From positions 49,802 to 113,801 of the forward strand of contig DF237227.1 of assembly GCA_000708835.1 (NCBI GenBank): DNA of 64,000 nt, given 5' to 3'. The notes below the pieces were generated by a model. The model did no database searches and was not told the origin of the DNA. It saw only the letters and a program-made list of their open reading frames with translations. Below are positions 22-63,019 of the stretch, piece by piece. Source of the stretch: Klebsormidium nitens (lineage: Eukaryota; Plantae; Klebsormidiophyceae). Position numbers and translations under genes: made by a program. Position 1 is the stretch's first letter. Each line of letters starts with the position of its first letter.

Positions 22-3000
22 CACAGGAACCAGCCCCGGGGGTCGTGCTTGGGCACCCACTTCTTCTTGCGCCACTCCTGCACGAGAAGTTTAAACAAAG
101 GTTAGGGTTATTCAAAAATCCAAGGCTTGGTGTCGACCGGAGAAAGTAGAATTTTATCTGCGGTCTCAGGAGGACCGTTGAAACGGCTTCGCTCAATCAT
201 GTAGACTCAGAGAATGCTTGGTGCAACTTCCAACCAAGAGCGATAGTTTACACGTCCATATCAGTAAACGGAGACGAAAGGCTGACGACTTGCAAATTTC
301 AGTTGAGGCGAACCCAAGAAAGCTTGACGACGAGGCGGTGGATGGATGAGTAGAAGCCTCCCTGTTTACGAAACGCGTGTGCAGAGCTTGTACGCAAAAT
401 CGGAAGTCGAGTCCTTGGGGAACAGCTTCTCGACGAGATGACAACCATCAACCATGGGCACCGAAGAACAACGTGCATCAGAGTAACTCCTGGAAGAAAG
501 GAGCCAATCAGAGTCGATTACACTTCCTTCGCGACTTACGTTCAGAGATAGCCGGCTAACAATCTTGAAGCAGTTGACGTCTCCGTTCGGGCCCGAGGGG
601 GATAGCGTCCCCTTCTCAACGGCGGCTTCAAACCTGTACAGAAAGGATGAAACGTTAGGACTTTACCGTCGGTGGATCTTGCCAGAAAGCAAGGAATATT
701 GGGTTCACAAAGACTCGGTTAAGGCTAGCGCGACTCGGTTAGAACTAGCGCAGGTACTCGTTCCACAGCTGAAAATGTTTGAGCCAACGACAGTCGATAA
801 GGAGCAAAAAGATCAAGACAAACATTAGGAAAGAGACTTCCAGAGGTTCCAGAAAACGGTGGATGATTGCACCCCTGAAAAAGTAGCACCGAACGAAGGA
901 ACTAACCATATTGCAGGTTACAATCTCAACACTCGTCCTTCCTGCGAAGACGGCGTTGATAAAACGCCCTACACAGGCTAAACTCCCACTTAACCCTGGT
1001 AACATTGGGCTTGAAAGAATCGCGGGCGACCGTTCCTTGATACCTCGGAGAGGGTAAAGAAAATTTGCCGTGCTATTTCAGCTTTTGAACCTTCAGATTG
1101 ACACAAGTGGAAGCGAAGACTGACCACTCCTTGGGGAACTCGAAGATGGTGTCATTGATGATCTTGCCCTCAAAAACGCCGTGCTCGAGCATCTCCTTGG
1201 GCGACAGCACGGGGTCGAAGCCGTCCTTAAAGTTTTTGCCAATGGGCTCGGAGAGCTCGTACGAGTAGCCCGTCTGCATCAGATCGTCCACCTCGATCGT
1301 GTCGCCGACCTTGTACTCCTTCTCCGGCCGAGCCTGCTTCAGGAGCTGCAAAATAGGGCGACATGTAAACGGTCAGGAAAGAGAAGCGGGATGGTTGCGA
1401 TGAGTGCAGGAAAAGTGAAAAGACTGCACGCTCGACCGGGCCTGCTTCAGGAGCTGCGAAAAAGGGCGACATTCGAAATGTCAAGAAAAAAAAGAGGGCT
1501 TGGTGCGACGAGTGTCAGGAAAACCGAAAAGACGCGCGTTTGTTGTGGTAAACCATATTGTATCGCAAACCCTGTACTCCTTCTCCGACCGGGCCTGCTT
1601 CAAGAGCTGTGAAAGAAAGAGGCGCACCGGATCAAGGGAACGGGCGAGTCACGTGGAAGCAGAGGACCACAACACAAGAAGTTCGTTCGTGCTTCTGCGA
1701 GCCGCAGATCTTGTTAATGGTCAGACGGGAGTAGTGTAAACAGTGCAGGTTGCTCTCTTCTACCCTCCAAGCTCGTTCATAGTTCCTTCTCCAGCTATGT
1801 CTCTTACAACACGCTTTACCATGTAAAAGGGTCCTTTCACTCAATAAAACCTACATGACAAACCAAATCCGCCGCAGGCATCCTCATAAGAGTCCTTTTA
1901 GCCAGTGAAGTCCTGAATATCAAAGCAAACCCGCAGCAGGCATCCTACAAAGCAAGTAGGAGGGTCTGACTGGAAGTGTGGAACCCCTGAAGTATCTCAT
2001 GTGATTTTCACCACCTTTTTCAAATCTCGTTTGCCCTGTCCCCCAAAATGACATCAGCAAGTCCAAGCAGTAAGGTAGCAATGCTCCTGCCCCCACCTCT
2101 TTCATGTCCTCGAGTGTCTCTAGCTTCTTCAGCAGCGCCATCCGCTCCTTCGACTTCGGCAGCTCGATCCCGTTCTCCTCGTGCAACTTTGCGACCGCCG
2201 CCACGCTCTTGCGGTGCGTCCCAGGATGCTCTGGCTGCTCCGAATGATGCACCGTCTTCTGCTTCTTGGCGTGCTTCTCCTCGTCTTCTTTCTCCCCATC
2301 ATTGTTCTTTTTCTTGTCTTTTCCCTTGCCCTCCTTCTCTTCCCCGTTGTTTTGTTCTCCGTTCTTTGCGCTGGCTTGAGCGCCTTTGGTTTTCTCTTGG
2401 TCGTTTTTGGATGTGTCGCCGGTTTTCTTCTCGTCATGAGCCTTCTCCTGCTCAGCCGCCTTCATCTCCTGCTCGCCTTCCTTCTTTCTCTTGTGATCAG
2501 GCCTGCAGGAAAGGCGACTTACTTGAAGCAAGCTTCTTCCAGGCTCCTGTTAATCTCCAGAATGGTGCACAAATTTTGCATCTGATGTGACTCTACTCTA
2601 TGGCAATCCAAGGTTTTCGTTGAGGTACAATCTGCATACAGAATTTACCAACTTTAGAAGAAGAATGAACAATGGAGTTCTTGAAGAGGGAAGGCCAATC
2701 CAATGAATCACTCGGTCTCCACCAGAATAGACCCAGTTCACTGTTTTGACTGCCATCTGGAGACCTGGAACGATCTGGGTGCCTGTCTGATACCAATCTG
2801 GCAAAGTGAGAGCATTCGACGTGCAGAATAACATTGCCCATCCTGCATGCAAAAGTCAAGGCCTCCAGCTCAATGGTCAAAGCTTTCAACTCTCCACATA
2901 AGCATAATCCTTCCAAAGTTGTCGGCCAATGAAAGCACGAAGTAGAAGATACTGCTGATCAAAGCCATGCCCCTCAGGGGCGATTTAAACCTCACCCAGC

Positions 3001-3510
3001 CAGCATCACTTCCGGGCGTTGAATGTCATCCAACCAGACTTCAGCAGTGTCCACTTGCCTCTTGCGATCCTTCCTGACTAAATCAAGTAAACCCGCATGC
3101 AAACTTGTGAGGATCACAACCTCATGAAGCAACCAGAGACAGGCAAGGGGATCACAACAGCAGGTCCCCCTGCTCAGGGTGCAGGTAAAACCTGCAGCCC
3201 TGCACTTATTGTCCCTTACTCAATCACCATTCAATTTGTCAACTGAGTCTACGACCAATGCAGGTCCTTGATTTACAACTCCCCTTTTTTAAGAGCTGAA
3301 TGTTGAATTACAAGAACGTACCTTCTAAGAGTAGCAAGGCCATCTCAAAAGAAAAAAACTACTCGTAGAAGCCTGATGCTAGTAAACTTACGTAGAGTCA
3401 TTCTTGGTTTGCTCCTTCTCCTCCTTTGTTGTTGTCTTCTCCTGCTCGGCCTCAGCAATGGACGCCCCTTCCTTAGCTCCAGACTTCGCTGGTTGCTTCT
3501 TTGGCGCCAT
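22..3510 (-). CDS. Uncharacterised protein, 3'-partial (runs off the window start); K/E-rich N-terminus plus a conserved domain of unknown function. Exons 3510-3392, 2502-2097, 1345-1125, 633-540, 77-22
   Basis: GT-AG joins keep one frame: MAPKKQPAK...TPDHKRKKEGE...EDMKE|LLKQARPEKEYKVGDTIEVDDLMQTGYSYELSEPIGKNFKDGFDPVLSPKEMLEHGVFEGKIINDTIFEFPKEW|FEAAVEKGTLSPSGPNGDVNCFKIVSRLSLN|EWRKKKWVPKHDPRGWFLW. From memory the motifs resemble a widespread hypothetical family (LTPxEMLxxGVFxGKY / DPRGWFQWYCRY); not database-verified. Confidence 0.8.
1433..1620 (-). repeat. Two acceptor-side echoes of exon 1345-1125 of gene 1
   Basis: cag|ctcctgaagcaggc recurs with exon-like starts at 1453 and 1606 (ctcttgaagcaggcccggtcggagaaggagtacagg). 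Confidence 0.85.
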
Positions 3511-10200: not shown

Positions 10201-13200
10201 CCTTTCGCACGCGCGTCTTTGGTGTTTGCAGCAGCATATTATTGCCGCAATCACGTAGAATGGAGACACCTCTGACAGGTTCCTCGTCATTCGTGCAGTT
10301 GTATCATTGACTTCAAGCCTCGCAACGAGTTTACGGCGGAGGAACATGAGTTGCTGATGTCCCTGGCGCAGCTCGTGGTGCAGGTAGGGGAGCCCGTGCG
10401 TGTTTTTGTTTCGTTTTGTTTTGTTCAGCGCATGAACACTCTAAGTAGTTTCTTCTTCAGATTTACTTCCTGAAAACGCAAAGTTTGATAACATTCGGGG
10501 CATTCTTTGCATAGTAGTGCATGTTAAGAATCAGTCCGCAATCCAAAACCTCGTCAGAAAATTACTGCATGACCACTCACCATTCAGGTGTATGCGCTTT
10601 GTAGAAGTCACATGGATGGCATCCACAACCCATGTATTGCTCTTTTTCTGATTTTCGGCAGACGGTTCGGAGAGAACGGTTTGCTGAAGGACCGTACCCG
10701 AAAGCTGCTAGGACTCTTTTGCAAGAGACGGAAAAGCACATGCGGGTATCTGAAGGGGGTTGGGAAAGCCTCGTCGAAGTATTTCTTCCTTCATTCCACT
10801 TATTACAATCTGGTATGCTTATGAAAAGGGTTAGAAAGTCAAAGCCAAGCCGGCATTGTGCTTTTACAGGAGATGGAGAAGCACACGCGGTATCTCGAGC
10901 TGCAGCGGATCCAGGCGGAGAGGTTCGAGGACGACAAGCGGGGCCTGCTCCGGGCGATCGGTGGGTTTTACGATTTCAAGATTTTAGGTCACCGTCTTCG
11001 CTGCATACGCCTGCGTTTTGACCTGACCGATGACTTGTTTTGCCGGGCCATCCAATCATCTGTTTCCTGTTTAACGCCCCCGTTCATCTCCTCTAGCGTT
11101 TCGCCGCACCTGATAATCAGCTGATGTCACGGCTGTCGCTTTGTCGCTGCTCTGACGTGCTCAAAGAAGGAACAATCCTGGCTCACGGTGACGTTTTGCC
11201 TCTTTCCGGGTTTTCCAGTGGTCTCCTCGACGCTGGACCGTTCTTTGGCAAAGCTGGACGAAGTATTCAAGTGTCAGATCGCTAATTTTTCGTTAAAGCT
11301 GGACGACTATTTGAGGGTCACATCCCTTCACATTTTTAAAACGCCCCCTGGCTTAGCGGGGCGCTCACAGGTGGTGCACCTCTGGCGCCCTTCTTCGATC
11401 TCGAACACATCAACTGAATGGTCTCCACATCCCTGACCAAAGCAATCCAACTCGCAACTCTTCTACCGACACTCACTAGACCTCAACTCTTCCGCGAAAA
11501 GAAGAAGAAAGAAGAAGCGAAACAGAAAGGGTGTCACGTGTCTCCCCGCAGACGCGTTCGATGAGGGCCTGGTCCTGTGCGACATGTCCCAAAAGGGCCA
11601 CCCGATCGTGTTCGTCAACGAGGGGTGGGAGAAGCTCACCGGATACTCCATCCAGGAAGTCCTCGGCCTGCACTGCGGCAGCCTGCTCGAGGTGAGATTT
11701 CCGCTGTGACGACCGGAATCCGCCAAACTCATGGGTCCAGCGGAATTGCGATTGGGTTTCTTTGCAATGAGGAGTGGGAGAAGCTCACCGGCTACTCCAT
11801 CCAAGAAGTCCTCGGCCTGCACTGCGGCAGCCTGCTCGAGGTGTGCTTTCCGCTCTTCCGGCCGAAGTCCGCGAAGTTTGTTCTTTTCAACGGAACCGAC
11901 TTCGGTTTTCACATTATCTATCACAAGAGGTGGGAGAAGCTTACCGGATAGTTTATCCAGGAAGTCCTCGGCCTGCACTGCGGCAGCCTGCTCGAGGTGA
12001 GATTCCGCTCTGACGGCCGGAGTTCCGGTAGTCCGTTGTTTCCAACGGAATTGCTTCCGGCTTCATTTCCGATGAGAGGCGGGAGAAGCTTACCGGGTAA
12101 TCCATCCAGGAAGTCCTCGGCCTGCATTGTGGCAGCCTATTCGAGGTTAGAATTCCGCTCTCAACCGGAAGCCGCAGATTCGGTTCTTCCAACGAAGTTG
12201 TCTTCAGCTTTTCTTCCCCCTTCCCTCAGCGAGGGCAAGAAGAAGCTCACTTGGGTACTCCATCAAGAAGTTCTCGGCCTGCACTGCGCAGCCTGCTCGA
12301 GATAAGATTCCGCTTTGATGGCCGGAATCTGCGGATCCGTCGCTTCCCACAAGAGCAACTTAGGTTTGCTCGTTTATGTCAAGGGGGGGTGGGAGAAGCT
12401 TACCGGGTACTCCCATCAAGAAGTCCTCAGCCTGCAGTTCGGCAGACTGCTCCAGGTAAGAATTCCGCTGTGAGGGCCGGATCTGCGGATCCGTCATATC
12501 CAACGGATCGACTTTCACGCTCCCGTTTTCCTCCCCCAAGGGTTGAGAGGCTTTCGATCCACGAAGTACTTAGGCCTGCACTGCGGCAGCCTGCTTAGAG
12601 CTACAAAAGCGCTTTGACTGCCGGTATTTCAGTAGTTCGTTGTTTCCAGCGGAGTCACTTTGAGGTTTAAGAACGATGACGAGACGACGTTGTTTCCTCA
12701 ACAAAGGAGAGTCTGCCCCTGATTGCACCGAATGGCACCCACTCACAGATTGTCCCTGATTGCAGGGACCCCTGACGGACAGAGATGCGAAGCGAACCCT
12801 CGCCGAGGCCTGCGCCAAAGGCGAATCCGCTTCCGTTGAGATCCTGAACTACCGCAAGAACGGAACGCCCTTCTGGAACTGGCTCCGGATACGGCCGGCG
12901 GTGTTACCGATGGGGACAACCTTCGCAAGCGGTGCCGGGGAGAGCAACAGGTGTGACAAAAGTTGCAATTCAAAAGCCAAATGAGAACTTGAACATATCC
13001 GGAATCTGGAAATCGAAACTTGGAATCTGAGAGCCCGATTTCTGGAGTAAAATTTCTAGAAATTGTACAGCGGGTGCGAACGTAGTTTGTGATCTAGCTC
13101 GTCAAGGTTCTGCTGAGCTCTTGTTCCGAGCTCTCATTTGGTGTGCCACCAGGATGCAAAAGATTCACTTCGACGAACCCTTACTCGACGGGAGACCGCT

Positions 13201-16200
13201 CAGGTCGATCTTCCTTTAGGAAGTCGAGATCTGCTTGACAGTTGCGGTGTAATAAGCTGAATGACGGAAAGAAGAGGTTCCGGGGAGTTTTACGCATTCT
13301 TGCACGATGGGCAAGGGAAAAGAGCAGCGAAACAAGGCAGTCCGCCAACAAGAAGTAGAGATACGTTTTACGGAAAATGTAAGCGTGCAAAGAAGAAGAA
13401 ACATGCTAGGCGTTTCTGTAGGTGCTAATAATTCCCTTTCCAACAGCATGTTGCACGAAGGAAAAAGGCAGTGGCTGGAGGCGCTCCAAACGCAAGCAGT
13501 CTTGCTCCGGCCCAGAACTCACAAGCGAAGATCAAAACCTGGATAAACGAGAAAGAACAAAACGCGTTTCTGCAGGTACTACTTTGGAATCTTGACCGAT
13601 TGCACGGCGCGCGAAGATTAGCTAGTTCAGACGCTCCTGTACAAGTCTAGAGAAGCGGCTTCAAGGGACGACACCAATAATAGGAAGAAGAAACGTAAGA
13701 AGGAAGAGGAACGAAAGAAGGCGTACGCTTGTTGCAGGTACTACTTTGGTATCCTGTCCGACTGTACGGTGCGCAAGGAGAAGGAGCAGCGGCTGGAAGC
13801 GTCCGGTTGCAAGAACTCTCGTTCCGCCCCGGAAGTATTGAAAGAAACAGATTGGAAAGAAAGAGAAAGAACGGAGCACGTTTTTGCAGGTATTACTTTG
13901 GTATCCTGTCCGACTGCACGGTGCGCAATGAGAAGGAGCAGCAGATACCGACTGCAGGAACTCTAATCCCGCCCCGGATGTGAACTAACAAACCAAATTC
14001 GGAAACAAAGATAAAGTACGAAGCGCATTTCTGCAGGTACTACTTTGGGATTCTGTCCGACTGCACGATCCGAAAGGAGAAGGAGCAGCGGCTGGAAGCG
14101 ATCCGGCTGCAGGAGTTCGAGGCGGAGGCGAGCACGCGCGCCAAGCGGTCGTTCGTGGCCAATATCAGTCACGAGATCCGGACGTGAGCACACAGCTCTA
14201 TTACTTTCTAATTCCTCTCGTTTCTCCTTTTGAATTGCTTGTTCTCGGTGCTGTGTATCCGTCTCCATACGGGCTACGTGCGGCCTTGGCGGGTAAAGCC
14301 GGCATTGCTTTGCTGATTTCGTCTCCATGCGTTGGCCCATTTCACCCAAAGTTAGCGTCAGCCAGATGCCAACGGGCCATGCGGGAGGAAGTTTGCTCTG
14401 GAATAGCGAACACAACATCATTACACTCAAAATCAAGGCCGCGGCTCCTTAACCCGGTTGCTATCCTGGGCAAGTTGATGAGGTCGATTTTGACATGCCG
14501 CCAGCGCTGTTTGCAGATGAAGGTGACGTCTGGTCAGAGCTTTGAAGCGGAACCGTTCCCAAACCCTTTTTTCCAACCCCGCGCAACCTTGTTGTGCAGT
14601 CAGCTGCTGACGGACGTTGATTCGCTAAATTGGTGGCTGACGTTCAAAACTCAGGTTGCGCCCTTCACCTGACCTTCTTAACCTGGGCAGGGTGACACAC
14701 GAGTAGCGTCAGTCAGTTGCTAAAATAGGGCTTTACTCGCTTAAGATGAGCGTGTTATGCCCTTAACGGGTTTGTTTAACCCAACTCTTTGACTTGCGCA
14801 GGCCGATGAATGCGATCCTGGCGTGCAGTCAGTTGTTGACGGACATGCCGTCGCTAACCGCAAAGCAACGGGAGCTGTCGCAGATGATCCAGGGCTCGGG
14901 GCAGCAGCTACTGAGCCTCATCAACGACATTCTAGACTTCAGCAAGGTGAGGAACAATTTCTGGTGGATGAAAAAGAGCCTCTGGAAACGTGTTCGTTTG
15001 AAAACTAGTGGAGTGAGGGGTTTGTAATGTTCTGACTCATCAACGACATCCTGGGTTTCAGCAAGGTGAGGGTCGGAATGAGGACAGAGAAACGGATTGA
15101 GGCTGGTGCAGTCGACGAAAGCATACACGGTTGAAAGTCTCGTTTGGGTTACAGCGTCCCGGCTCAAAGCAAACTTAGCGACTTTGAGAGGAAGGGAGAC
15201 GGACAACGAAAAGCAATGAGATGGAAGGCAAGAACAGGAGAGGGTGACCAGCCGTGATGAGCTGATGGTTGTCATTACGTCTTGGACTCGTCAAATGGGC
15301 TGTTGGGGATGTCAAAGGCTCTCACTTTGCGTCGAACTTGACACCATGAAAAGACAAACGAGGCAATGCGCGCTCTTTTCGAACGCCCCAACGGGTGCAT
15401 GGCTCGAAGAGGCCCCAATTGGCTCTCTCGCGAAGGAAACCGCCGTCTTTACAAACACGAAATCGAATATGCAGCCACCACAGGACGAGTCGATCCTAAA
15501 TATCTAGAAAAAACCCGCAAACCTTTAAAACCCTTCTCAATTACCTCTCTTTACAGCTGGACGCGGGCAAGCTCGCGCTCAAACTGGCGGAGTTCAGCCT
15601 GTGCGATGCCTCGACTCCTCCGAATCCAAAACCCTCAAAACAGCACAAGCCTGAAACCCTAACCCTACTGACGCGTTCCTGCTTACAGCTGGACGCGGGC
15701 AAGCTGGCGCTCAAGCCGGCGGAGTTCAGCCTGTGGGGGTGCCTCGACTTTTGCGTGGAGATGCTCGTGCTCAAGTGCGAACACAAGGGCCTGCACCTCT
15801 CCTACAACATGGACCCCTCTGTCCCTGAGTAAGGCTTCATTTCTCGGCCTTACTCCAAATTTGGGCCCTTACTTCGTACGTCGGTCCTACTCTTTGATTG
15901 GCCTTTTTCTACAGCTCAGGCCTGTCGTTTCTGCAATTCTTTTTTCGGATTGCCTCTTAGGCTCTTTATCTAGCCAGCAATGTGCGACAACAACGTTCGT
16001 TCAAGATAGACGTTACCGTGCGGGGAAAGTTCATAGTGACTTCCATAACAAAGACCTGTCACCCTCGCTTCAGCTCGGTCTTTGACACCACCCTTCGCGT
16101 TTGCAGCTGGATATGGGCGGACGAGGTCCGCCTGCGTCAAATCCTGACCAACCTTCTGAGCAACGCCTCAAAGTTCACCGACGAGGGGGGGGAGGTCGAA

Positions 16201-49685: not shown

Positions 49686-51650
49686 GCGTGACACGTGCCT
49701 CCGTTCTGACCGTCAACCAATCGAATTCTCGAAATCAACGATTCTAGGGGGGAGAGCCAGATTCTCGGATATGCACCCAGTACTGTGACGGCGTGTGTCA
49801 TGGTGCCGTGCATGTGATTCTATGTGTCAGTCCAACCCGATCCGTGTCCATCTTACGGAAGCAACATGCAAGGTCTTGGCATGCAAGAATCCTGAACCCC
49901 ACGACCGTGACGGAGAAATCATCCTTGAAGAAATATGCCGCCATCGTTATTTTCCTTCTAGCTTGTGATGTTGCATGCCATGAGCTGCGGCCTGACACCA
50001 TTGATCTTATGTTGGGTCTTAGTTTCAAGCCTAGCATGCAGTTGCAGCTTGATTGTAATGATTACAGAACCAATGGTCGCGTGCCACAAACCACGCACGG
50101 CAGCGGCTGATGCACTGGCAGGTCGGGTCGCTCCTTGTCTTCATAATACATGGCATGCGTGAGCAATGATGTCCCGGGGGTTCATTTGTGCGCTACTACA
50201 TGACGATCCCTGCAAAGGAGTTGCGAGGATTGCGCATTTAAGGCCATTGGTACGTTGCAAGCTAGCAGGCTAGAGACACTCATGCATGCAATGTGCTGCT
50301 CAGTGTATCGTAAGGTTGCTCTGTATACGGTGCATATCATTCAAAGCTCCAAACGCATAAAAGGTAGACTTACTGGCCTGCTACTGTTAGCAGGCTTGCC
50401 TTTCTGAAGTTTGTTTGCGAGCAGGTCGAGGATCCGAATCGGGTTCATGCCCGCGAGTTTGCGCTCGCGCCGCAAACCGGGCGACCGCCGACCGGACGAT
50501 TCAAGTTACCAAATATCGAGTGGTCACGCGCGCGCGCGTACACCGATTTTAAGATTTGGAAGTCTGTCGGCGCAACTCATTCAAGCGGCGGTTAAAAAGA
50601 GTAGACTGCTGTAGAGGCTAAAGTTCAATCATCAGCTCTATACTAGCGTGCCGGCCGCGGCCGCCTAGCAAGGCCAGGCCTGAAAGGGGCCAGGCTGAAT
50701 TCCGAGTCTATTTGTGAGTGGCGGTGACCTCAGTTGGAAGCACTTTTGCAGGCTGATGTCAACAGCAATCGGGAGCCTGACGTCACCACCGGTCACTGCC
50801 GGCCGGCGCGTCTGTCTCACCACAGTTGCATGATTCCATCACTGCCCCATGTATGACAATCAGCCAGATTCCCTGCGCATCAAGAGTGTTGGTCGTGTGC
50901 GGTACGGTCGACACCACTCTTGTTAGTTCGAACCAGTCTTGACGAGTCTTTAATGCTTGTGAACAGATCTGCTCACGCGTATATCACAGTGGAGGAACGT
51001 GATAGTGCCACGCCCTACCAAATGAAAAGTGGCTAAGGCCCTTGCAAACTGTTGTGGCCTTGTGGGCCTAATTACATTCATGAATTTAAAGCCGACCAGC
51101 GTACTGCGCACTCAGCGAAATGCTGAGGCATTAGGCAATGCGGGCATTGCACTTTGGCCTGTCGGTGTGATGGAACTATGACAGGCACTCAACCCCGGCA
51201 CATTCACACACAATGCCCTGGTCTCTGTCGATTAAGGGTCTGGCCGAACAATGCTGCCAGAATTAAAGGATTGGGGCGCCAGATAAGTCCCAAGCAGGGC
51301 GTGTGGAGTCGTTTTGCGATTGGATTGTAAATGCCGAGCAAATCTGGGGCGATGCGCTGGTGGCTTTCTCACCCGTAACATAGTCGAAACAGAACCTGGT
51401 GCAAATAAGGTGAGCCCAAGCCTCGGGACCGGGATTGGGAGTGAAGAAGTTGCGGCAGTATCTACTTCGCATTCTCTGAAATGGCGTGCAATGCTGCGAT
51501 CCCAAGCGACTGAAGAACAAACTGAGGTTTCCCAGACTTCCGCCCATTATCATTTGAGGTGCCCAGCAACCTTGAGAGAGCGCAATGCTGGAAACTGAGC
51601 GACGGGGAAAGAAGACGACTTTGTCGGGATCACCTCCAGTTGTTGAATTT

Positions 51651-51752
51651 ACCTGCAATGCTGCTTTCTCAGCGGTGTGAAGAATAACCTGCAATGCTGC
51701 TTTCTCAGCGGTGTGAAGAATAACCTGCAATGCTGCTTTCTCAGCGGTGTGA
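51651..51752. repeat. Perfect 36-bp tandem repeat, about 2.8 copies (acctgcaatgctgctttctcagcggtgtgaagaata)
   Basis: Units start at 51651, 51687, 51723, with no spacers. Confidence 0.95.
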
Positions 51753-52595
51753 TCACAATATAGGGTATCTAACTCTGTCTGGCTGCCACTCTGCTTTGGG
51801 GGATGATTACAGATTGCTCGTGTCGAGAATATTTTGGGGGATATGGACCTCAGTTCCGCCTCGTAAGAGAAGCTGGTTCTGTTTGGAAATAAGAGAAAGC
51901 AACGGCCGAAAGTCACGGACTAGTCCAATATGACAAAGCCAGATAATGGTAAACACACAAACCAGCCAAGCTGTGAGCTTTCACCCACTTCGTGAAAGCA
52001 TCAACATTGGAGTGGTAGCACCTATGTGGACTGTTCGAAGGCGAATTCAAAAATTGTGCGGTCCCTATGCCCGTTTTGACAGTCAATTCGGCTGGGCCTG
52101 CCGATGAGGGCAGATATAGATTGAGAAGTTGGCGGCTTTAGATGGAAACCAGCTTGCGAGTTGGGCAGTCTCGTCCAATTCAGCAAGATAAAGGTCTCAT
52201 CCTGGCTTCGTCTGCAGTTGAAGCAAAGGCTTAGAATTTACAAGAAAGGGGCAAGGGTGAAGGGGACGGTTGCCATGGGTCTAAAAGGCGCACGCGAGGT
52301 GAGCTCTCTAGGTATCTCTCGCAGGAACACGAGCGTATTAGTGTGGAGATCGATTCAAGGTCCAGTCCTCAAGAGAATGACATGCAACTGGAATGTTTCG
52401 AAAGGCGAAGATCTGGCAGGCTACAATAAGCCGGAGAACTGACTGATACAACTTCAAAAATGCACTCGAGTTTGATATAACATCAGCAATTCGAAGTGCG
52501 CTCAATTTTGACCATCTTCAAGATGCAAGTAACCAGATACGCGAGAGTCGGCATACACGTCGAGCAGTTCTGCTGAAGTTTGCGAGATATCTTCA

Positions 52596-55017
52596 ATGAC
52601 TCAACAAGAAAAACAATCTCCGAAAGCTCCGGCGTCAATCCCAGTTGAGGACACGGAGGCGGCGTCATTTGCGAACTCGTCTGTCAAAAGTGGATTGCTC
52701 GACCAAACTGACGGTTGGATGCTGCAGCCTGGCGGGGAGGTTGCAACCAAAGACAAAGCGGCAGCTCGACAGCGGGCGCAGGAAGCGCTGGACGCTGTGC
52801 AGCGGGCGGTGGAAGGCGATAAGCTATGGGGCAACGCAGAGTGGTAAGTTCGAAACTGCGAGCTACGCAGCGAGGACAGTTATACAATGTCCCGTCTGCT
52901 TGATTCCACAACGTCTCCGACCTGATTCACGTGATGTGCTTTGAGTCACTTGACCATCCGTCTTGTCGTCCAGGTTGATCCCTGCTTCACCATCTTTACT
53001 CTATCACAATTTCATTTTCGTAGACGTAGGAAGACATCATGATTTGGGCTATGTGGCAGCGTGTAAGGTGGAGCGTATTGTGGGTCTGCAGCGGTACTTT
53101 CATCACTAGACGCATGCTCCCTTCTGAAACTGGTCAAAGCTAATCGTATCCTCTGGATTTTCCCATCTCTGAAGCTCGTTGGGGATCTGGTGCTATTATG
53201 ACTGTAAAACGTCTCTGACTTACCTGAGAGAACCGGATCTCCTTCTCTTGTGCCTTTCGTGCACTTTTGGTAACGAAGGCCAAACAATCGCATTAGAATT
53301 TGACGAAAGAACGACTTGCTTCTGCGGCTTTCAAGTCAAGGGCAGCAAAGAAGAAAAGAATGGTCACAACCAGCCCGTGGCTACTGCTCCCCACCCGGTT
53401 ATGAAGGCGTCTTCAATAAGAAGCTTGTTTGCGTTGGTATCGTACGCTTTAGCAGAGTTTGTTCCTCAACCCCGCTGGGTTTTGCAGGAGGAGAATGAGC
53501 GTAAACGCGAAGGAAGAGAAATGGAGCTCGCAGCAAGACAGAACTGACAAAGCTGCTGCCCCGCCATTGAACGACACTCTCCGTGGATCCTCCTCGGCCC
53601 ACCACCCCTGCATATGCGCGTGCTTATCTACGGTTCTAGGGCCCCGAAAGCTGCCACGTGGCGAGCATCGGGTTGCTACACCCAACGGTCTCGAAACGAG
53701 GAGCGGCTCATGGCAGGAGGCGAGCGGAGATGAGGACACAGATGTAGGCGAGGAGAGTTTTGAGGATGTAATTGAGTCGGAGAAAGGTCGGAGAGTGGTC
53801 GAGGAAAGGTATGATCCGGAGAGTGAAGAAGGGGACCCTCGGGCCAGAAGAGCGGCCGCGGATGCGCAGCGCGCGGCCGAGCGCGCGCGCCTGGAGCGGC
53901 TGTGCCTAGAGCTCGCGCGCCTTGAGGCGCGGCTGCAGGACGTGGTGACACGTGGCAGGACAAGCCGGCCACGAGGCTCGAGCTACGAGAGCCGTCCACG
54001 AAACCCAAGCTATGAGAGCCGGCCGCGAACCGCAAGCTACGAGAGCGAGGGATCCCCCCAGTTCGAGGACAAACGGACCATCTTCGAACGGGCGGCCCCG
54101 GTGGCGCGAAGAGCGCCCCCCGAGGACTATAAACCCCGATCCAGGGGCGCGCCTTGGAGCGCGCGCGCGCACGCGCCCGGCGCGCAAATCGAGCCGCAAT
54201 GGGGGAAGTCGGAAGCGGCGGGTTTGGCGCGCGGCGCGTACGAGGCCGCGCGGATGTGTCGCTTGGGCGTCAAACCCTGCGCGTACCGCCGGCGGAATTC
54301 CGCCGGAGAACGGGCCGGAAAGGGGAGGGGGCATGAAGATGCGCGCTGCTGCGACGGGTGTGGGTCTCCCACGGTGGAGCCCACGTGGGCCACGTGCGCT
54401 GACGTGGGTCGGGGTATCAGGGGTGAAGAGCTGGTTCGCCTGAAGAGGTGAGAAACGAAAGTGGGGTCCTTGGGGAATTAACGAAGACGGCTTTACGACG
54501 GCGCTAGTAGGAACGGCCTCGTGAAAGTATAGATCAAGAAAAGAGGGAGGCCAAGTTGAAGGGAGATTCTTGCGAGGTCCTGGGGGATCAAAGTTCAGAA
54601 AGGAACTTTGGAGGGTCCAGATCCGAGTCTTTCGTAGACTTCGGTTTAAACCTTTCGACTTCATCTGAGATGGTTCCTTCTTGGCAACGATCGCTGAACT
54701 GACGAACTACTTTTCCAAAACGCACATATGTTGCTAGTCCTTTCCACCGTATACTCAACGCCCTGTCCCTGGCTGCAGACACCACCGCGCGCTGAGCGCG
54801 CACTGCCGACGGCAGGTGAGCGCGCTCCGGGAAGTCGCCGCCCGCGCGCGCGTCGCCGAGGGCCTCGCCACCAGAGCCGCGCGCGCGGCCGCGGCCGCGA
54901 CTCACCCCGCGGCGGGCTCCCTCTGCGGGCCGGCTGCGGTGTGCAGGAGCCGTGAAGGGGGCGGCCCGCTTTGGCTCTGCTGAGGCTGCCTGGGGGTGTG
55001 GACATGAGGGAACTTGA
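52596..55017 (+). CDS. Hypothetical R/A/E-rich protein with predicted coiled coils and SYESRP repeats. Exons 52596-52843, 53488-54447, 54779-55017; possibly 5'-incomplete
   Basis: Three GC-rich open segments join in frame at GT-AG (AEW|RRMSVN; LKR|HHRALS). No family motif recognised. Confidence 0.6.
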
Positions 55018-56499
55018 AACGGATGTGATCAGAATCAGAGAACGATGTGTATATGAGTGTAAAAGCGGGTTTTCGGAAGGGCCCGTACTCAGATGAGCGG
55101 TGGACCAATCTGACAGCGGGGGCGACGGAAGTTCGGCCCGGCCAAAAAGATGGTGGATGCTTTGGACCTGGCAAATTCTGAAAGGAACGAAGGCTCGGGC
55201 CCGCACTCGAGGTCAGTTTGTCAGATCAGGACATGTTCGGTTCAGTAAAGAACGATGCGTGAAAGAGCTTTAAGCCTTTGTCACATTGAAGCGAGAGGCG
55301 AGCAGCGTGTGTGTGTGCGGGTCACTTGGAACCGTTGGCCATGCTTTATGAACAAGCCACTGTCGAGACGTACCGATCCATACGTCGAACCTGCGGCCCG
55401 GTCACTGGTCTCCTTTCGAAACGACTTCAGGTTGGACCATTGCAGTGCATGCTGGCATTCGATCAACCTGATGCATCAACTTAAGATCGGTCACTTTGTA
55501 ACTTGAGACCCAGAATTTATGACACATGCAGTTGCAACTTCATCATTCTGCATGCAATGATGGACTCACTCAGTGAGCAGATCCTCAATTAACTTGCAAC
55601 ACAATAACTAGTAAAGCTTTGAGCTAGGCCGGCCCGCCGCAATATCGCAATATCGCCCGATCCACATCAGGCAGCATACAATATATGGCTTCAAGAGTGA
55701 CCATGCATAGCAGATGATAGATTGTCGCCGCCCGATCTCTACGGCGCGGCGTCCGTTGACCGTACCTTGACATGCATGCACAAAATGAACTGATCATGAA
55801 TTGATATGCAACGAGCACGCGTGGGTCCAGCACACCGTGCACTCTTTAGAGTGCAGCAATGACTGACAAAGCATTGGACTATTTTCTATGTAAGTCTGCG
55901 AGGCAGACGACTAGACCTGTACATTAAGCTGAAGCGGCCCTTCGCTTGACCGGTTGCCAATTTGTTTTTGTACTTGTGGTTCGTTGGCAAATGCTGCCTG
56001 GTGCTGACATTCTTTGCACCTCCACACTATCTGCTTCAATCAATGTTCGGCGCACGAGCTCGATGTCATGCGCGCTGCGATGGATCGTCCTTGTCCGTTC
56101 ATGGACGATCCCAGTCCGTTTTTGATATATGTATGGTACAGCATGCAATAGCTATAAAGTAGCGCTAGATTTACTCTTCGGGCTGCCTCCGGTCAGTCGA
56201 TCGTTTCTCCTCGAGCAATGGACTACGACCCTGTGATCTTTGTTTTCGTCTGCGGAACCAAAGATAATCTTAGTGAGCCGAAAGCGATTTGGCGTAAGCC
56301 CATAAACCAGTGTACAAGAGCGTTTTCGTGACGTGACTTGATGCAGAACCGCAAACTCGCTACAAGACGGCAAGACGGAAATTCGACTAGAGACTGAACT
56401 ACTCTCTTCCCGCGGAATAATAAGCATAAGCGTTCCAAACGTCCACGTCGTTCGAACCGATGAACAAGGAGGAGACCTTTGAGAAAGTAGCCCGCCCCC

Positions 56500-59400
56500 T
56501 CATGAGCTTTCGAACCCCGAACATTGCGTGAAACCCCATAAAAGGCCGGTAACAAGGTCCAGCAAGGGCAATGGCAAAACGCAACGTTTACGAAAGCTAG
56601 CTGCGGTCATTCTGCGTGCCGCAGAGAGACCTCTGGAATCGTTTTCTGCACCAAGCGACTCGTTGCGACCAGACTCTTCAACCGGGTCTTTCGGTGGGGT
56701 CCTTGAAACGCGGCGTCTCTCACCGGTTCTTTGCAGCGTTTGGTTCCAGCGAAGCGTACGGAGTCGAAAACGCGGGTTTGAGGGAAACATGCAAGCGTGT
56801 AGACGAGCTTTTGATTGTCTAAAAACGTCAAAAGGGTTTCACCTTTCGAGAATCGCGGCAACTCGCTCAGGTCCTAACCCCAGGTACACGACCAGCGACA
56901 GATATGCGGCCGCGCCTAGGGCGAGCGCCACGTGTACGGCTGCGATTCGCGGGGCTTGCGTGATGGCGAACACGACCAGCAGGTAGCCGTTGATGGACAA
57001 CACCAGCAGCACGATCAGCCAGCACAGCACCTGGACGTGGACGGAACCGGAACGGAATGTGAGCTCGGAAACGGATTGGTATCGTGACCCTGGAAACGTA
57101 GGCGGGGGAGCCCTTGCAAACGGTGTGATCGGACAAAGTGTCGAACGTGTCTAATGAGGTCGTCACGAAGCTGTGAAGCGGATTGACGCGCAAAACGCGA
57201 AGCTGGCGAAACAGGCGCGTTGCGAAATTGTGCCGCGGATGCATGCTCTCAAAACATCAAGTTTCGGATACTGAAGTAAACTCTCATACATGTCAAGCTT
57301 TATGGCAGCGCATATATCATGATGTGCATGATACCTGCCCCACTTCGGCAAGGTCGTCCCGACCGGCCTAATACTGATCCATACCTTGATCAGCGCCTGA
57401 CTTTACATTTTGGATTGATCCAGATTTATAAGATACCGGGCCACATCGCTAGCTTGCGCACAAAGAAGAGGCTCAACAGGAACAAACGTCGCCTCGAACA
57501 ATCGTTGCTGTTGAGAGCACCGCTCAAAGCTCTTCAAACACAACGGACGGAGCGACGATTGCCCGTACACCGAGTTCATGACGATGCAACACAAAGAAGG
57601 AAGCGCTTCTTGACCTTACCGTTCTCGTTTTGCTGATGACAAAGGGCCCCATGACGGACCGGGATGACGCCAGCATCATGAGCGGAAGCAGCGCGAACGG
57701 AACTTGGACGGACTGCAACACGTTGACCCACTGGTTCTGCAACGAAAACGAAAACGGTCAGGTCAAGGGGGAGCAGTACTCGTGACGCTAGTTGAAATAT
57801 TGAGCGGCCCCCCGAAAAGTTCGACGACTTGTCGAAACTCTGACCGTTGACGATTCGAACTTTCTCAGATCTTAAAACAAGAGTCAAGCTGGATGTGGTG
57901 GGACATTCCATGGAAATTTTCGTTGATGCTCTTCAAAGTCCCAGCGCAAACCTTCTTCAACCCGGAGACCAATAAGAAGGGGGCCTCGGGAAATATTCTC
58001 GCAAGAAAGCTCACAAGGGTGCCCGTTTCACACTCAAACCTCAGAAGCCTACGTCAGCGGTGTGTACACTCACAAGCACTCTTAAAAGTCTTAGCGCGAA
58101 GTTTCTTCGACCCGGACCAATAAGAAGGACGCCTCAGGTGACATCCTTGCAAGAAAGCTTTCCACGGTGCCCGTTCACACGCAAAACTTGGAAAGCTATG
58201 TCAGCGGTGTGTACACTCACACGCACTCTTAAAGTCTTAGCGCGGAGTTCTTTAACTCGGACCAACAAGAAGGACGCCTTAGGTGATATCCTCGCGAAGA
58301 AAGCTCTCCACGGTGCCCATTTACACGGGAAACTTGGAACCCTATCTCAACGGTTTAAACACTCACAAGCACTCTAGAAGCCCCAGCGCGAGGTTCCTCC
58401 AACCCGGACCAATAAGAAGGAGGCCTCAGGTACTTCCCTCGCAGAGAATCTCTCTACCGGTGCCCGTTTACACACGAAACTCGGAAGCCTATCTCAACGG
58501 TGTAAATACTCACAAGCACTCTAGAAGCCCCAGCGCGAAGTTTCTTCAACAGGGACCAATGAAAAGGAGGCCTCAGGTGATATCCTCGCAAGACACCCCT
58601 CCACGTTGCCCGTTCCACACTCATACCTCAGAAGCCTACGTCAGCGGTGTGTACACTCACAAGCACTCTAGAAGCCCCAGCGCGAAGTTTCTCCAACCCG
58701 GACCAATAAGAAGGAGGCCTCAGGTACTTCCCTCGCAGAGAATCTCTCTACCGGTGCCCGTTCACACACGAGACTAAGAAGGCTTTGTCAGCGGTGTGAA
58801 TACTCACAAGGACGTCCAGTTGGCTCCCCCGCTCGCTGCCAAAGTAGACGGCCACAGCCATCGTCGGAACGATCGCAAAGCACCGAGTGATCAGCACTCG
58901 TTTCCACGCCTTTATTTTCCAGTTGAGGAAGCCGCTCATCACGAACTGGCCGGCGTAAGTGCCAGTCATGGTGCTGCTCTGGCCTGCGGCGAGGAGACCT
59001 GAACGGAACGGAGCGGAATGTCAGAGCGGAAGTGGAGAGGACCATTTTTATGTCGCGCCTTTATTTTCCAGTTGAGGAAGCCGCTCATCACGAACTGGCC
59101 GGCGTACGTTCCGGTCATGGTGCTGCTCTGGCCGGCCGCGAGGAGACCTGAACGGAACCCGGGCGGAATGTCAGAGCGGAACGGGGGAGCACAAAACTTG
59201 TTTCCACGCCTTTATCTTCCAGTTGAAAAAGCGGCTCATCACGAACTGGCCCGCGTAAGTGCCAGTCATGGTACTGCTTTGGCCCGCGAGACCTGAGTGG
59301 AATGCGGGCGGAATCTCGGCGGAACCGTGGAGTACAGCACTCAACTCTGTGCCTGAAGTGCAATTGACGAAGCCGCGAGTCGCATGTCACGTGGCATGCA

Positions 59401-62400
59401 CGTATCTGAAAAGGAATCACTTTAGTGGAAATGGGTTCACGCAAAACTCCGTCGTGAAATTCCAAGCACAGTCATAATCGAAGCTCAGCCCTTCCGATCA
59501 GCCACCTAGGGCACTTTCATTTAAGTCAATCGTTCACTCTGCAACAGACTGACTAATGTACACTGATGTCTTTACTAAAACTAGACGGTATGTTTTACTA
59601 TAACTAGAAGGTTGGTCAAAAAGAGCTTAGCAAGTCGCGTGAGCTTCGTACCTATGGCCCACACGTATTGCATCGGCACGAAGCCGAGCCCCCCGAAGTG
59701 TTTCTTCAAATACTCCGCCGCATTCGCCATCCCAATAAGCTTCGCCTGGGGCTTCCCAAAGAACGCCTTCGCGAAGACGGTCGTCAGAAATACGTTGATC
59801 AGGAAGGAGAGTATCAGTGCCGCCGTGCTCTCGATCGAGTAGTAGCGCAGTGACTCGCGGACGCGCGACTCGTTGCGGGTGTCGATGCTGCGGGATTGAA
59901 CGAGGGCGGAATGCAGAAAAACCTGCAGAGAAGAACGGTTTGAGATTGGAGTACCCTGGTCTAATTGGAGCTTTCCAAGTTCTTGAATTCTCAATCACAG
60001 ACAGCAATTTGCGCCGAGATTGTCTCATTGAATGCTTAACGTCAACATTTAGCTGACACTATCGAACGGCCCGGAATGCATATGGAAGAAAGGCCGGCTG
60101 CGCAGGGCAGCGCAGATGGGTCACCCAGGAATGGGTAGGAGGCACAGCGCAGTAGCATTTACTTCGACAGTGGACTTTACAGCCTTCTGCATCCGAATCA
60201 GACGCTTCCACCGCAAATCCGACAAGCGTCTCAAACTCAACGACACAGGGAGACCGGAAGACCGAAGGGGAACCTGACAAGGAATTTGGGCAGGCAATGG
60301 AGATTCATGGTAACCGGACGCTTCCGGAAACGGCGCAGCCGGACGCTCACGTTGTGCGGCATGATGACTGCCCCTACAATCGCCACTGCTTGCTGGATGG
60401 CACTCGGAGCGACGTACGGAACAAGGAGGCCTGCGGGAGAAGAAAGCGACTCAAGGGCTCGACCGCAATTTCGCAGGACGGATGTGCTTCTGCAGTTCGG
60501 ATGCGTGTTTTGGATATCACGTCTGCCGCCGTTCCATGCGGTTTCGTCACGGTAGTGCTGGCCTCCTGCAACAAAGGCATCAAATCGTGTACTGCGGAGC
60601 TGTCCAGCCACGATTTTCTCGTCCGAAGCAAATGGATCTTTTTGTGAGCCCAATATTTTTGAGACTGGTAACACCACCATTAGTAGAGTGCGAGAAACCC
60701 TGAGGAAAAGCCAAGCCGATAAGTCAAGTGACTCATCAAATAGGAGAGGCATGGTGTAACTTTATCAATTTGTAATGAAGACCGGAGAGAAGTGGCCCGA
60801 AAGCAGTCTACCTCGTAAGGAGAGGCCTTACGTAGAATCAGTTGGCAGACCCGGATGAGATGGGAGAAACTAGATAGTGACCCCAGACGAGTGGGGCCGC
60901 AGAAGGGGGATCAGAGCAATAGAAACAACCAGTACGACCGGGGGCCACGAGCAATCATGGCGGAGTGGTGACTGTCCCACACATGCAAGCGCCTCGTCAA
61001 ACAGAGGCCGAACATATCCAGTCTTCCCCGATGGTTGCTTGTTGAGATCGGCTTCCTGAGTTGGACTCGTCACTACTAACCCTGTGAAAGCGGCTTCAAA
61101 GCAAAAGGCCGCTTCCAAAGAGGATTCACTTCCTGACTCCCTGAGCAAAGATGGTTCCGACTGGAGTGCTCCAGGTGCAACTTTCAAGCGATTGGGGTGC
61201 ACATCTGACAGAATCTATCAACAAGATTGCAAACATCAAACACGTCAGCAAATCTGCTCACCTTTGGCGATTGCGACGGGGTTCGGACGTGCCTCCACGA
61301 AGAGTCGCGCAAAGGCGATGGCCATAATGCCGATCAGGCAGCCCAGGAACGCCTCAAGCTTGCGCACGCCGATCTGTTCCAGGAAGAGAAACAGTGTGCT
61401 GCGAGAGGCCGAGGAACAAAGTTAGCTCTTCAACCTCAGGACGGCAAAGTGGCAAAATGTGATCGCAGCGCTTCAATTTCCAGCTTGCAAATTTTCCACG
61501 GCCAACGTTCAGGGCCCTCCGGCTCCATGAGAGATTGAGCGTTGTAAGCAGGTCACGTACAGGGACACGAGAGTATTGCAAAGTTACTAAAAGCGACCGA
61601 CTCTGTCTGCCTTTTGATATGCTACATGAAGATTTGTTGATCAAAGGTACTTGCAAGGTCGATTCTAGGCGTTGATGATAAAGAGTGTCATCAGCGGGCT
61701 ACAGGTGCGCACGAATGGTCATAAGCATGATCAAGTCAAATACATCTGATAAAGACATTTCTTAAGTCAAACTGGCTGTGATCCCTCGGTCCACTCCTCC
61801 AATCCCGAAACACCCAGCCCGTTGCATTTACACACCACCCAGACATCTCAGTATCGGTGGACTGTTCTCGAAAGTTCACTGTGTTTAACTCCTCCCTTCT
61901 TCATGTCCTCAAAGCTGGTCAAAAGTTGTCTCTTCTCACCTGTCTGCTGCCGTAACCAGCACTCCGACCCAAAGGGGAACACGGCCGTTGCTCAAAATCT
62001 GGATGGCGATCGCCGTCCCAATCACCTCTTGAATATCCGCCCCAACAATTGCAATCTCGGTCATTATCCACAGAATGATACGTGGAACAAAGGGATACTT
62101 CTCTCGACACAACTCGGCGAGGTGCTTCCCTGTTGCGACGCCTAAGCGAGCGGCTGTCAGCTGGATAATCTGCAGCAGCAGGAAAATGGATGTTTTGTTG
62201 GTCTGATGCACTTAGCGAGGAACTGTTGGCCAGCTTATGCATTGCCGACATGTTGATGAGGGATATTTATCAAGGTGAATATCTTTCAACAGACACGGGA
62301 GCAAGGCTAGACACATATTGAAGCAGTTTAACGGGGGCAATGAGCTCCTGCTGTCAGAACATAGGAACCTTCTGTTAAGAAGGAGAAATTAACGTATTCG

Positions 62401-63019
62401 AAAAGATGAATGTGAGACTTGCTCTCCTTTCATCAACAAACTGAGAAGCACCTAATAAGCCACTGCGTTTACAACTGTTGCCCAGAGAGCGTGCACACCA
62501 CTCTCGTTCTAATCAGGCAAGAGAATGAAACTTACATGAATGGCACTACGTTCAGGACTGTTGCCCAGAGAGCGTCCACACCACTCTCGTTTTGATCAGG
62601 CAAGAGCATGAAACTTACATGAATGGATTCAAAGAGCAGGTGAAGGCAATGATAATCCGCCAATGAATCAAAGACAGAACGGGGCGAGAGCACGTTCTTA
62701 CCAGTCCCATTAGTGTCGCCCAGAAGAGTACCCACAGCAGCTGGTATCCCGCCTGCGCGCCCGCCTGGAGATCGCTCTCTAGATTTCCTGGGTCCAAATA
62801 CGCTATGGACATCAGGAAGCCCGGGCCCGTAAACGCCCACAGCTTTCTCCAGCTGAAAGGGGGTGGTTCGCCGCTGACATTCGGCCCCCCTTCTTCGTCA
62901 GGAAGAGGCCCATAGCCGTCAACATTGATCTGCTGAGAGTGCTCATACGCGCGGTCAGTGGATTCGCTGGGGAGGGCGTCGCTGATGGCATCGCGATCTA
63001 AGCGATCTGTAACGGCCAT
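56500..63019 (-). CDS. NRAMP: NRAMP (SLC11) divalent metal transporter. Exons 63019-62702, 62169-61940, 61398-61262, 60430-60351, 59922-59652, 58998-58808, 57736-57620, 57030-56843, plus an uncertain terminal exon near 56630-56400
   Basis: [34 protein letters not shown] (TM1 DPGN); [18 protein letters not shown] (TM6); [25 protein letters not shown] (consensus transport motif); [19 protein letters not shown]. Stop position not resolved. Confidence 0.95.
57925..58810 (-). repeat. 147-bp tandem array anchored on an NRAMP splice donor (about 6 units)
   Basis: actcac(aag) (minus strand ctt|gtgagt) starts at 58068, 58215, 58361, 58508, 58655, 58802 (the last is the live donor). Confidence 0.95.
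59030..59320 (-). repeat. Two acceptor-side echoes of the NRAMP transport-motif exon
   Basis: cag|gtctc...cagagcagcaccatgac.gg.ac.tacgc.ggccagttcgtgatgagc with exon-like starts at 59147 and 59292 (live 58998). Confidence 0.93.
62470..62625 (-). repeat. Two 83-bp tandem copies in NRAMP intron 1, containing a donor-like gtaagt and faint similarity to the exon 1 end
   Basis: gttgcccagagagcgt.cacaccactctcgtt.t.atcaggcaagag.atgaaacttacatgaatgg duplicated. Confidence 0.75.

Follow-up and report, generated by a model that had tools for sequence, protein, structure and literature searches.

We analysed a stretch of 64,000 nucleotides of nuclear DNA from the intron-rich green alga Klebsormidium nitens (contig DF237227.1, positions 49,802 to 113,801 of the forward strand; G+C ~52%), hereafter called the window, and found that exon ends together with their splice sites are copied, often several times in tandem, into the introns adjoining them. 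Of 65 modelled junctions, 16 have copies, between 1 and 7 each; they comprise 7 donors and 9 acceptors in 13 of 34 introns and belong to five genes, as an initial annotation of the window had noted. The copies contribute ~6.45 kb, i.e. 29%, to the 22.4 kb of modelled intron DNA, and the mean intron length is 859 nt with and 537 nt without copies, in line with the earlier claim that they inflate introns. We propose that these arrays are leftovers of repeated local head-to-tail duplications spanning a live exon-intron junction, a type of structure known from lancelets under the name 'mirage', and assign this reading a probability of about 0.6. All coordinates refer to the first letter of the window.

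Copies of exon borders in five genes

Exons were modelled with a self-trained exon finder and corrected between 11.3 and 17.3 kb with RNA contigs from three runs, giving a set of six genes. Pfam domains bear out the gene identities proposed in the initial annotation: a hybrid histidine kinase (PAS_9 at 11554-11691, HATPase_c at 16108-16512, Response_reg at 18516-18833), CcmE (23259-23645, minus strand), TSR1 (AARP2CN at 43081-43584, RIBIOP_C at 47718-47939) and NRAMP (Nramp at 59653-59922, minus strand). Junctions with copies belong to these four genes and to gene 1; a Pfam match at 34465-35205 marks a PDDEXK_6 gene. For every modelled junction, a probe of 90 nt of exon and 90 nt of intron was searched against its own intron. 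Border copies mislead ab initio gene finders and led to five false exons in our own model. The ab initio exons 11961-11996, 12384-12455, 13890-13979 and 45142-45225 turned out to be copies and were ruled out by RNA junctions and phase checks, which also corrected the choice of 15557 over 15689 as acceptor.

Self-BLAST of the window yielded 65 direct-repeat high-scoring segment pairs (HSPs) and 3 inverted ones. As every direct HSP has an offset <3 kb, the window is essentially free of dispersed repeats and holds only local head-to-tail copies. The HSPs form 19 clusters, of which 16 (A-E, G-O, Q and R) contain a live splice junction, the others being F, S and P. Tandem Repeats Finder (TRF) reports arrays at 11616-12481 (period 149 nt), 13733-14089 (147 nt), 23596-23916 (132 nt), 45130-45490 (169 nt), 57935-58810 (147 nt), 58896-59284 (149 nt) and 62474-62626 (83 nt). 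The median spacing of successive copies is 149-150 nt in the window, compared to 152 nt in related genomes. The exon-derived part of a copy measures 5-102 nt and in no case covers the full exon; the opposite splice site is therefore never included, just as the initial annotation had it. Homology extends over the whole unit, junction included, in arrays B, C, I, K, R and L. Both kinds of border are copied at exons 14802-14946/15689-15828, 45645-45847, 48743-48885 and 58808-58998.

The histidine kinase gene (plus strand) carries six of the junction clusters. Donor array B (11615-12680) belongs to the PAS exon 11552-11691, whose live unit is followed by six copies of ~149-156 nt, each composed of 77 nt of exon end and ~72 nt of intron; identity of their exon parts to the live copy is 0.94, 0.88, 0.84, 0.74, 0.83 and 0.53. 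Acceptor array C (13486-14093) precedes exon 14037-14183 with copies at 13890, 13738 and 13576 (spacing 147, 152 and 162). Cluster D (14917-15071) is a donor copy of exon 14802-14946, comprising 30 nt of exon and GTGAGG and lying 119 nt downstream, and cluster E (15551-15749) an acceptor copy at 15557, which precedes the live site 15689 by 132 nt and consists of TTACAG and 61 nt of exon (91% identical). Donor copies of exon 18516-18834 make up cluster G (18792-19138), one with 43 nt of exon end, 167 nt downstream and with its GT deleted, the second being a 21-nt perfect patch beyond it. In cluster H (19426-19678), a 72-nt duplicate recurs 181 nt apart, and its second copy overlaps the acceptor of a small exon (19672-19706) that is conserved in the related contig L001.

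Seven acceptor copies form array I (23596-24555, minus strand) in the intron of the CcmE 5' untranslated region; they consist of the acceptor and the first 52 nt of the CcmE exon including the start codon, spaced by 132, 132, 143, 76, 112, 132 and 142 nt. The clusters of TSR1 lie on the plus strand. Two copies of the first 62 nt of exon 44211-44400, both devoid of the AG, are found upstream of it (J, 43892-44274), and exon 45645-45847 is preceded by an array of six acceptor copies (K, 44540-45730) at 45482, 45313, 45142, 44974, 44789 and 44623, with a spacing of 163-185 nt and frameshifts or stops in most. The same exon has a donor copy (L, 45800-46011; unit 112 nt) with 48 nt of exon, 51 nt of intron and GC in place of GT. 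Exon 47717-47941 has a donor copy 208 nt downstream (M, 47927-48185), which includes 15 nt of exon and 36 nt of intron. Exon 48743-48885 is flanked by two acceptor copies upstream (N, 48425-48801; CCGCAG and ~55-60 nt of exon, 88% identical, spacing 144 and 167) and by a donor copy 119 nt downstream (O, 48852-49008; 34 nt of exon and ~4 nt of intron).

NRAMP exon 58808-58998 (minus strand) is likewise copied at both borders. Array Q (57929-58813) comprises six units of 147 nt, each starting with CTT/GTGAGT, and begins 4-5 nt before the live donor; the few exon nucleotides that the initial annotation had ascribed to it are thus these 4-5. Cluster R (58896-59336) contains two acceptor copies, the nearer with 92 nt of exon at 95% identity and the farther with 102 nt at 85%. 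In gene 1, the live acceptor of exon 1125-1345 and two acceptor copies upstream in the intron make up cluster A (1296-1614, minus strand), with junction equivalents near 1453 and 1606 and exon extents of 21 and 50 nt.

Two other origins of such arrays, mobile elements of the introner kind and errors of assembly, had to be considered. Introners are nucleosome-sized and resemble the border-copy units in this respect, and tandem arrays are a classic site of assembly errors. However, each family is private to its own junction and carries exon sequence of its own gene; no non-local match was found in the self-BLAST of the window, which refutes the mobile-element reading. Copies at one site differ mutually by 5-50%, DNA contigs of run X3 match the window without differences (the X3 sample is the same as that of X1, a possible source of the assembly), RNA contigs likewise match exactly, and related genomes contain the same structures. 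The arrays are hence no assembly artefacts, and we regard the two explanations together as practically negligible.

Splicing past the copies and their decay

RNA contigs of three runs join 11691 to 12766, 12950 to 14037, 14183 to 14802, 14946 to 15689, 15828 to 16107 and 16513 to 16904 in the histidine kinase gene, and exon 10870-10960 to the exon start at 11552. Based on these junctions, the live donor is the first copy in B and D and the live acceptor the last copy in C and E, which agrees with the earlier statement that donor copies lie downstream and acceptor copies upstream of the live site. Splicing of the mRNA appears undisturbed, as the contigs, an assembly product from which rare variants are dropped, skip arrays B, C, D and E. 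Many of the sites passed over are intact, as had been claimed: GT is retained in 13 of 16 donor and AG in 21 of 25 acceptor copies, with mean splice scores of 3.8 and 5.6 compared to 6.2 and 6.9 for live donors and acceptors. About twenty copies score above the 95th percentile of intronic GT/AG sites, several of them above their own live site.

The acceptor at 15557 deserves particular attention. It scores 8.9 vs 7.4 for the live acceptor 15689, and its use would add 132 nt (44 codons) in frame and without a stop; in the RNA contigs of three runs it is unused, and only the joint of 14946 with 15689 is seen. Being stronger, in frame and stop-free, it is ignored for reasons that neither nonsense-mediated decay (NMD) nor exon definition accounts for. 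Exon definition, which the initial annotation had presumed to keep the copies silent, is thus contradicted in this one case. An unspliced RNA contig (11968-12793) spans the 3' part of the array-B intron and crosses the acceptor into exon 12766. Its contig depth is 25, 9.7 and 5.6 in the three runs, with exons at ~100 and other introns at 0-4. This single case, judged from contig depths, may reflect raised retention of the decoy-filled intron.

Could the copies be alternative or mutually exclusive exon parts, or alternative 5' or 3' splice sites, which diversify the protein? Some are open in frame, among them 15557 with its 44 codons, and the nearer copy of cluster R even encodes an identical peptide. 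Yet none possesses both splice sites, most unit lengths are no multiples of three, frameshifting indels occur in 13 of 30 copies and in-frame stops in 9 of 30. The RNA contigs of the three runs contain no unambiguous joint to a copy site. A joint of 11996 with 12766 in X5 was considered as decoy use and rejected, since it rests on only 27 nt on that side, which are identical in the live copy and the copy. We therefore consider a protein-diversifying role very improbable.

Substitutions between copies and live exons number 90, 78 and 195 at codon positions 1, 2 and 3, approximately as expected if copies decay at all positions and the live exon changes synonymously. Polarised with the related genomes, 1, 6 and 22 of the changes fall on the live side and 43, 43 and 81 on the copy side. 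Coding constraint on the copies was therefore dismissed: the third-position excess corresponds approximately to synonymous change of the live exon, and no clear deficit at positions 1 and 2 is left after polarising. At one synonymous site of CcmE, the live exon has T in the window and G in L001, and most copies of both species have C; hence, the copies behave as fossils of older exon sequence. The same site speaks against gene conversion from the live exon as cause of the better-kept exon parts, and the youngest pairs, i.e. the nearest copies in R and CcmE, fit neutral ratios; array B and cluster E are not explained in this way. The claim that the farthest copies are the most decayed stands for B, R, CcmE and, for the farthest copy only, C; Q and K show no such gradient, and in J and A it runs the other way. 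Decay with distance is thus only a tendency.

Anchoring, growth and turnover of the arrays

We asked whether the junction anchoring is more than ASCERTAINMENT. Among 17 clusters in modelled introns, 16 include a junction. If each founder landed by chance somewhere in the intron that now holds it, taken at its length before copying, at least 16 anchored clusters would arise with a probability of 8e-4; the value falls to 3e-5 when every modelled intron is allowed as target and to 3e-12 when the whole non-exonic part of the window is. As control, 180-nt probes were tiled through intron interiors and searched against their own intron at the same E-value (116 overlapping probes, equivalent to 58 independent ones). 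They revealed only two purely intronic duplicates. One is a 59-nt direct duplicate at 1827-1946 in the gene-1 intron 1346-2096 (offset 61, 75% identical). The other is cluster S (62461-62626, minus strand), an 83-nt tandem duplicate, 90% identical, in the NRAMP intron 62170-62701; located ~75 nt from the donor and lacking a detectable exon part, it is the sole purely intronic cluster at the whole-window threshold and was assigned to the control class. At equal sensitivity, 16 of 65 junction probes thus compare with 2 of 58 independent interior probes (odds ratio 9, Fisher p = 8e-4). Purely intronic duplicates, whose equal frequency would have spoken against the proposed tie to junctions, are clearly rarer.

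In the process we envisage, a local head-to-tail duplication of ~90-210 nt (median ~150) would span the live junction, so that the intron would receive a second copy of the splice site with part of the exon end. As splicing continues at the copy still joined to the remainder of the exon, the gene would stay functional, and the inner copy would be free to decay. Later duplications of the live junction would shift older copies deeper into the intron, and arrays may also extend by duplication of whole units or unit pairs. The junction excess would reflect a mutational bias towards junctions, possibly caused by template switching of replication forks or during repair at a transcription- or splicing-linked barrier with a nucleosome- or Okazaki-sized step, and the copies would mostly be neutral by-products rather than a control device.

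That duplication recurs at one and the same junction, as the initial annotation had suggested, follows from differing exon extents: 21 vs 50 nt in A, 92 vs 102 nt in R and 41 vs 105 nt at exon 6 of the related NRAMP contig L004, with the larger and more decayed copy farther from the live junction. A longer exon part cannot derive from a shorter one, so that each of these copies goes back to its own duplication of the live junction. The donor copies of L004 exon 6 (11852-12155) have their intron breakpoint (+51) in common, and the new joints display microhomology of 4-5 nt (GTCT, TCAA). Dimeric higher-order repeats are present in Q (294 nt), B (305 nt) and at L004 exon 8 (276 nt), and the CcmE units are related in a star-like manner around the live copy.

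Contigs of three related algae were found through homologues of three window exons: the Logan contig L001, the 49-kb Joint Genome Institute (JGI) metagenome contig L004 and, from a third relative, the Logan contigs L005, L002 and L003. L001 encodes a CcmE 97% identical to that of the window, with 27% of four-fold sites differing; NRAMP exons of L004 are 70-97% identical, and all 8 exon borders map one-to-one. All 11 clusters of local direct repeats in L001, L004, L005 and L002 sit at junctions, mostly others than in the window. At the kinase exon matching 18516, L001 carries two acceptor copies (none there in the window), and it lacks donor copy G. In NRAMP, L004 carries copies at the donor of exon 1, the acceptors of exons 3 and 5, the donor of exon 6 and the acceptor of exon 8, compared to both borders of exon 6 only in the window. 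L005 has copies at both borders of an exon that is clean in the window (46484-46749), and the CcmE acceptor is accompanied by copies in all three species. A global alignment of the CcmE copies between window and L001 looks collinear, yet their identities form a star around the live copies; the copies may thus be positional orthologues or have been renewed independently.

Orthologous introns of window and L001 (17932-18515, 18835-19671 and 22613-23258) align with an identity of 0.42-0.44, i.e. at the level of shuffled sequence, although only 27% of four-fold degenerate sites differ. Intron DNA may thus turn over much faster than synonymous sites, unless the latter are under constraint. As ordinary introns do not align above that level, most arrays must be younger than the split of window and L001, and as the copies of relatives sit mostly at different junctions, turnover is fast. 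The duplication process is thus lineage-wide and fast, and the differences between species in copied junctions show turnover rather than polymorphism. Independently of the arrays, a block with CcmE and a neighbouring gene (25029-26046) is inverted relative to the 3' end of the histidine kinase gene between the window (22400-26050) and L001 (4100-7100).

Several findings weigh against our reading, the first group of which concerns detection. Exon and intron parts of a unit differ strongly in identity (0.94 vs 0.54 in the first copy of B, 0.89 vs 0.42 in the second of C, 0.84 vs 0.39 in the second of A), the intron-derived part of arrays B and E being ~5x more diverged. Selection keeps the live exon constant, which makes junction copies recognisable for longer, and the junction excess is therefore partly a detection effect, which weakens but does not remove the case for junction-targeted mutation. 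By a hand estimate assuming 5-fold longer visibility, the intron-only test in the window drops to p ~0.14, which is not significant, and the pooled 27 of 28 clusters give p ~0.02. About five young events have an intact intron part, 4 at junctions and 1 in an interior, too few to decide.

These points lead to a rival explanation, according to which ~150-nt duplications arise uniformly in transcribed DNA, selection clears the exonic ones and purely intronic ones fade quickly, while those across a junction stay visible through their conserved exon partner, so that the anchoring results from filtering and ascertainment. A random 150-nt founder in an intron of 300-600 nt spans a junction with a probability of 0.35-0.7, and both the far stronger divergence of intron-derived parts in B, C and A and the failure of ordinary window and L001 introns to align better than shuffled sequence would fit. 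The 9-fold excess of matches for junction probes over interior probes of equal sensitivity is nevertheless larger than the ~2-fold gain in detectability that theory provides. Moreover, the purely intron-derived 147-nt units of array Q are detectable at 72-92% identity, and yet Q begins exactly at the donor; ~40 kb of non-junction, non-exonic window DNA contain no arrays, the clusters of the related contigs are without exception at junctions, and in 6 clusters the breakpoints are no more than 8 nt away from the splice site. We hence judge uniform duplication unlikely as the whole explanation, and a true junction bias likely, albeit not proven.

The second objection to junction-spanning duplication stems from clusters D, E, G, J, N and O, in which similarity ends 4-8 nt past the splice site (in G just short of it): the exon part is 75-91% identical, and over the remaining portion of the 119-167-nt spacing similarity is close to chance level. 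These six are not accounted for by simple tandem duplication with neutral decay afterwards. Possible candidates are copying in patches that breaks off just past the splice site, a fast turnover of the intron part, and selection that disables the context of the decoys.

The third is the retention of GT/AG in 34 of 41 copies, in excess of the fraction of 0.64 expected at 80% identity (p = 0.007), which leaves some room for function. Arrays might be retained e.g. as decoy sites or copied exonic enhancers that tune splicing speed, intron retention or U1 recruitment. Besides the GT/AG excess, the many scores equal to those of live sites, the tail of the array-B intron, unspliced at 5-25% of exon depth vs 0-4% in other introns, and the CcmE acceptor copies in three species are in favour of such a role. 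It is opposed by the decay of the copies through indels and stops, by the different choice of copied junctions in related genomes without any positional orthology of copies shown, and by the irregularity of copy number, unit length and exon extent; the retention signal, in turn, is the single case from contig depths described above. Overall, we deem a retained function improbable and prefer to regard the copies as mostly neutral leftovers of junction-spanning duplication.

One might go further and speculate that splice junctions are hotspots for ~150-nt duplications, that a template switch backwards by about one nucleosome or Okazaki-fragment length, at a transcription- or splicing-linked barrier, acts in the same way in lancelets and Klebsormidium-type algae, and that it provides a general, hitherto unrecognised route of intron growth. 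The breakpoints 4-8 nt from the splice site in six clusters, the shared breakpoint and microhomology in L004 and a unit of 150-160 nt in two distant lineages are compatible with this idea, which we put forward as a tentative one that may well prove wrong.

Besides the junction copies, the window contains three further repeat or coding features. Cluster P (51484-51758, minus strand) comprises three perfect 36-nt units ending in CATTGCAG followed by GT (CAG/GT) and an older diverged copy 167 nt downstream; with no gene model there, it may represent a very young donor duplication in an unannotated gene. Cluster F consists of in-frame direct repeats (17044-17265 and 17460-17576, offsets 90 and 66 nt) in the histidine kinase exon 16904-17931, located in a low-complexity linker; these are coding repeats, not junction copies. 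The GC-rich region 53450-55230 (57-59% G+C) contains long open reading frames in both orientations (332 amino acids plus, 266 minus), and a 319-amino-acid plus-strand frame tested from it has no Pfam match.

Border copies compared with known systems

The initial annotation had suggested that the phenomenon might be new. As to its kind this does not hold, since lancelet mirages have the same structure (PMC3087553, PMC3902484); the interpretation as recurrent, junction-linked duplication that inflates introns and leaves decoys stands. The term 'mirage' goes back to Canestro et al. 2002, who used it for units of 10-72 bp in Adh3. In two amphioxus globin genes, mirage units measure 150-160 and 157 bp; 5' and 3' boundaries are duplicated, many units contain AG/GT, splicing is regular, two haplotypes differ in having 6 vs 3 units, and the mechanism is unknown (Ebner et al. 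2010, PMC3087553). TnC and PGBD5 are further cases (PMC3902484).

Other modes of intron evolution resemble the border copies less. Intron gain by tandem genomic duplication (Rogers 1989; Hellsten et al. 2011; Gao & Lynch 2009; reviewed in PMC3443670 and PMC4974935) likewise involves an internal tandem duplication that is silenced by splicing and doubles splice signals. There, however, an exonic AGGT segment is doubled and a new intron arises between the copies, whereas here an existing junction is doubled and an existing intron lengthened. The units contain pre-existing intron sequence, at variance with the Rogers model, and no new intron position was seen, array introns keeping positions common to relatives where checkable (8 NRAMP borders vs L004). 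Introners (PMC9860276) are also short, roughly nucleosome-sized, endowed with splice signals and adding intron DNA, but they constitute dispersed mobile families at many loci; here, families are local, confined to one junction each and contain host exon sequence, and no introner-type dispersed copies, i.e. direct-repeat HSPs with an offset >3 kb, were found in the 64 kb. Tandem exon duplication shares the local, intragenic tandem arrangement including exon sequence. Tandem or mutually exclusive exons, in contrast, are whole exons with both splice sites that are used in mRNA; the units described here have one site and a partial exon, and the main transcripts skip them.

The significance of the finding lies in the material it offers. 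Mirages have so far been reported at few lancelet loci, their cause being unexplained; a genome of ~100 Mb in which about a quarter of junctions were copied would supply hundreds to thousands of natural replicates. With these, one could test exon borders for a role as duplication hotspots and look for the determinant of the ~150-nt step. The observations also bear on the share of intron length that stems from border duplication and on how the spliceosome ignores dozens of full-strength decoys 100-200 nt from real sites, and the border copies may serve as dated fossils of older exon sequence.

In their anatomy, the algal arrays correspond to lancelet mirages in that tandem repeats span one exon-intron boundary and sit in the adjacent intron, 5' and 3' borders are affected, splicing is undisturbed and AG/GT is present in many but not all units; even the unit of ~150 nt is close to the 150-160 and 157 bp of the globin mirages. 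Mirages are clusters with unit-level turnover, length polymorphism and somatic instability; the structures of the window, known from one DNA sample, share the anatomical features. The copies are mostly old, with 53-95% identity compared to 81-100% among globin mirage units. The host is a streptophyte green alga instead of a chordate, and our literature search retrieved no description of such copies in Klebsormidium, in any alga or at such density. What is new is therefore solely the occurrence in a green alga and the density, with 16 of 65 junctions and 29% of the intron DNA in a single 64-kb window as opposed to a handful of mirage loci.

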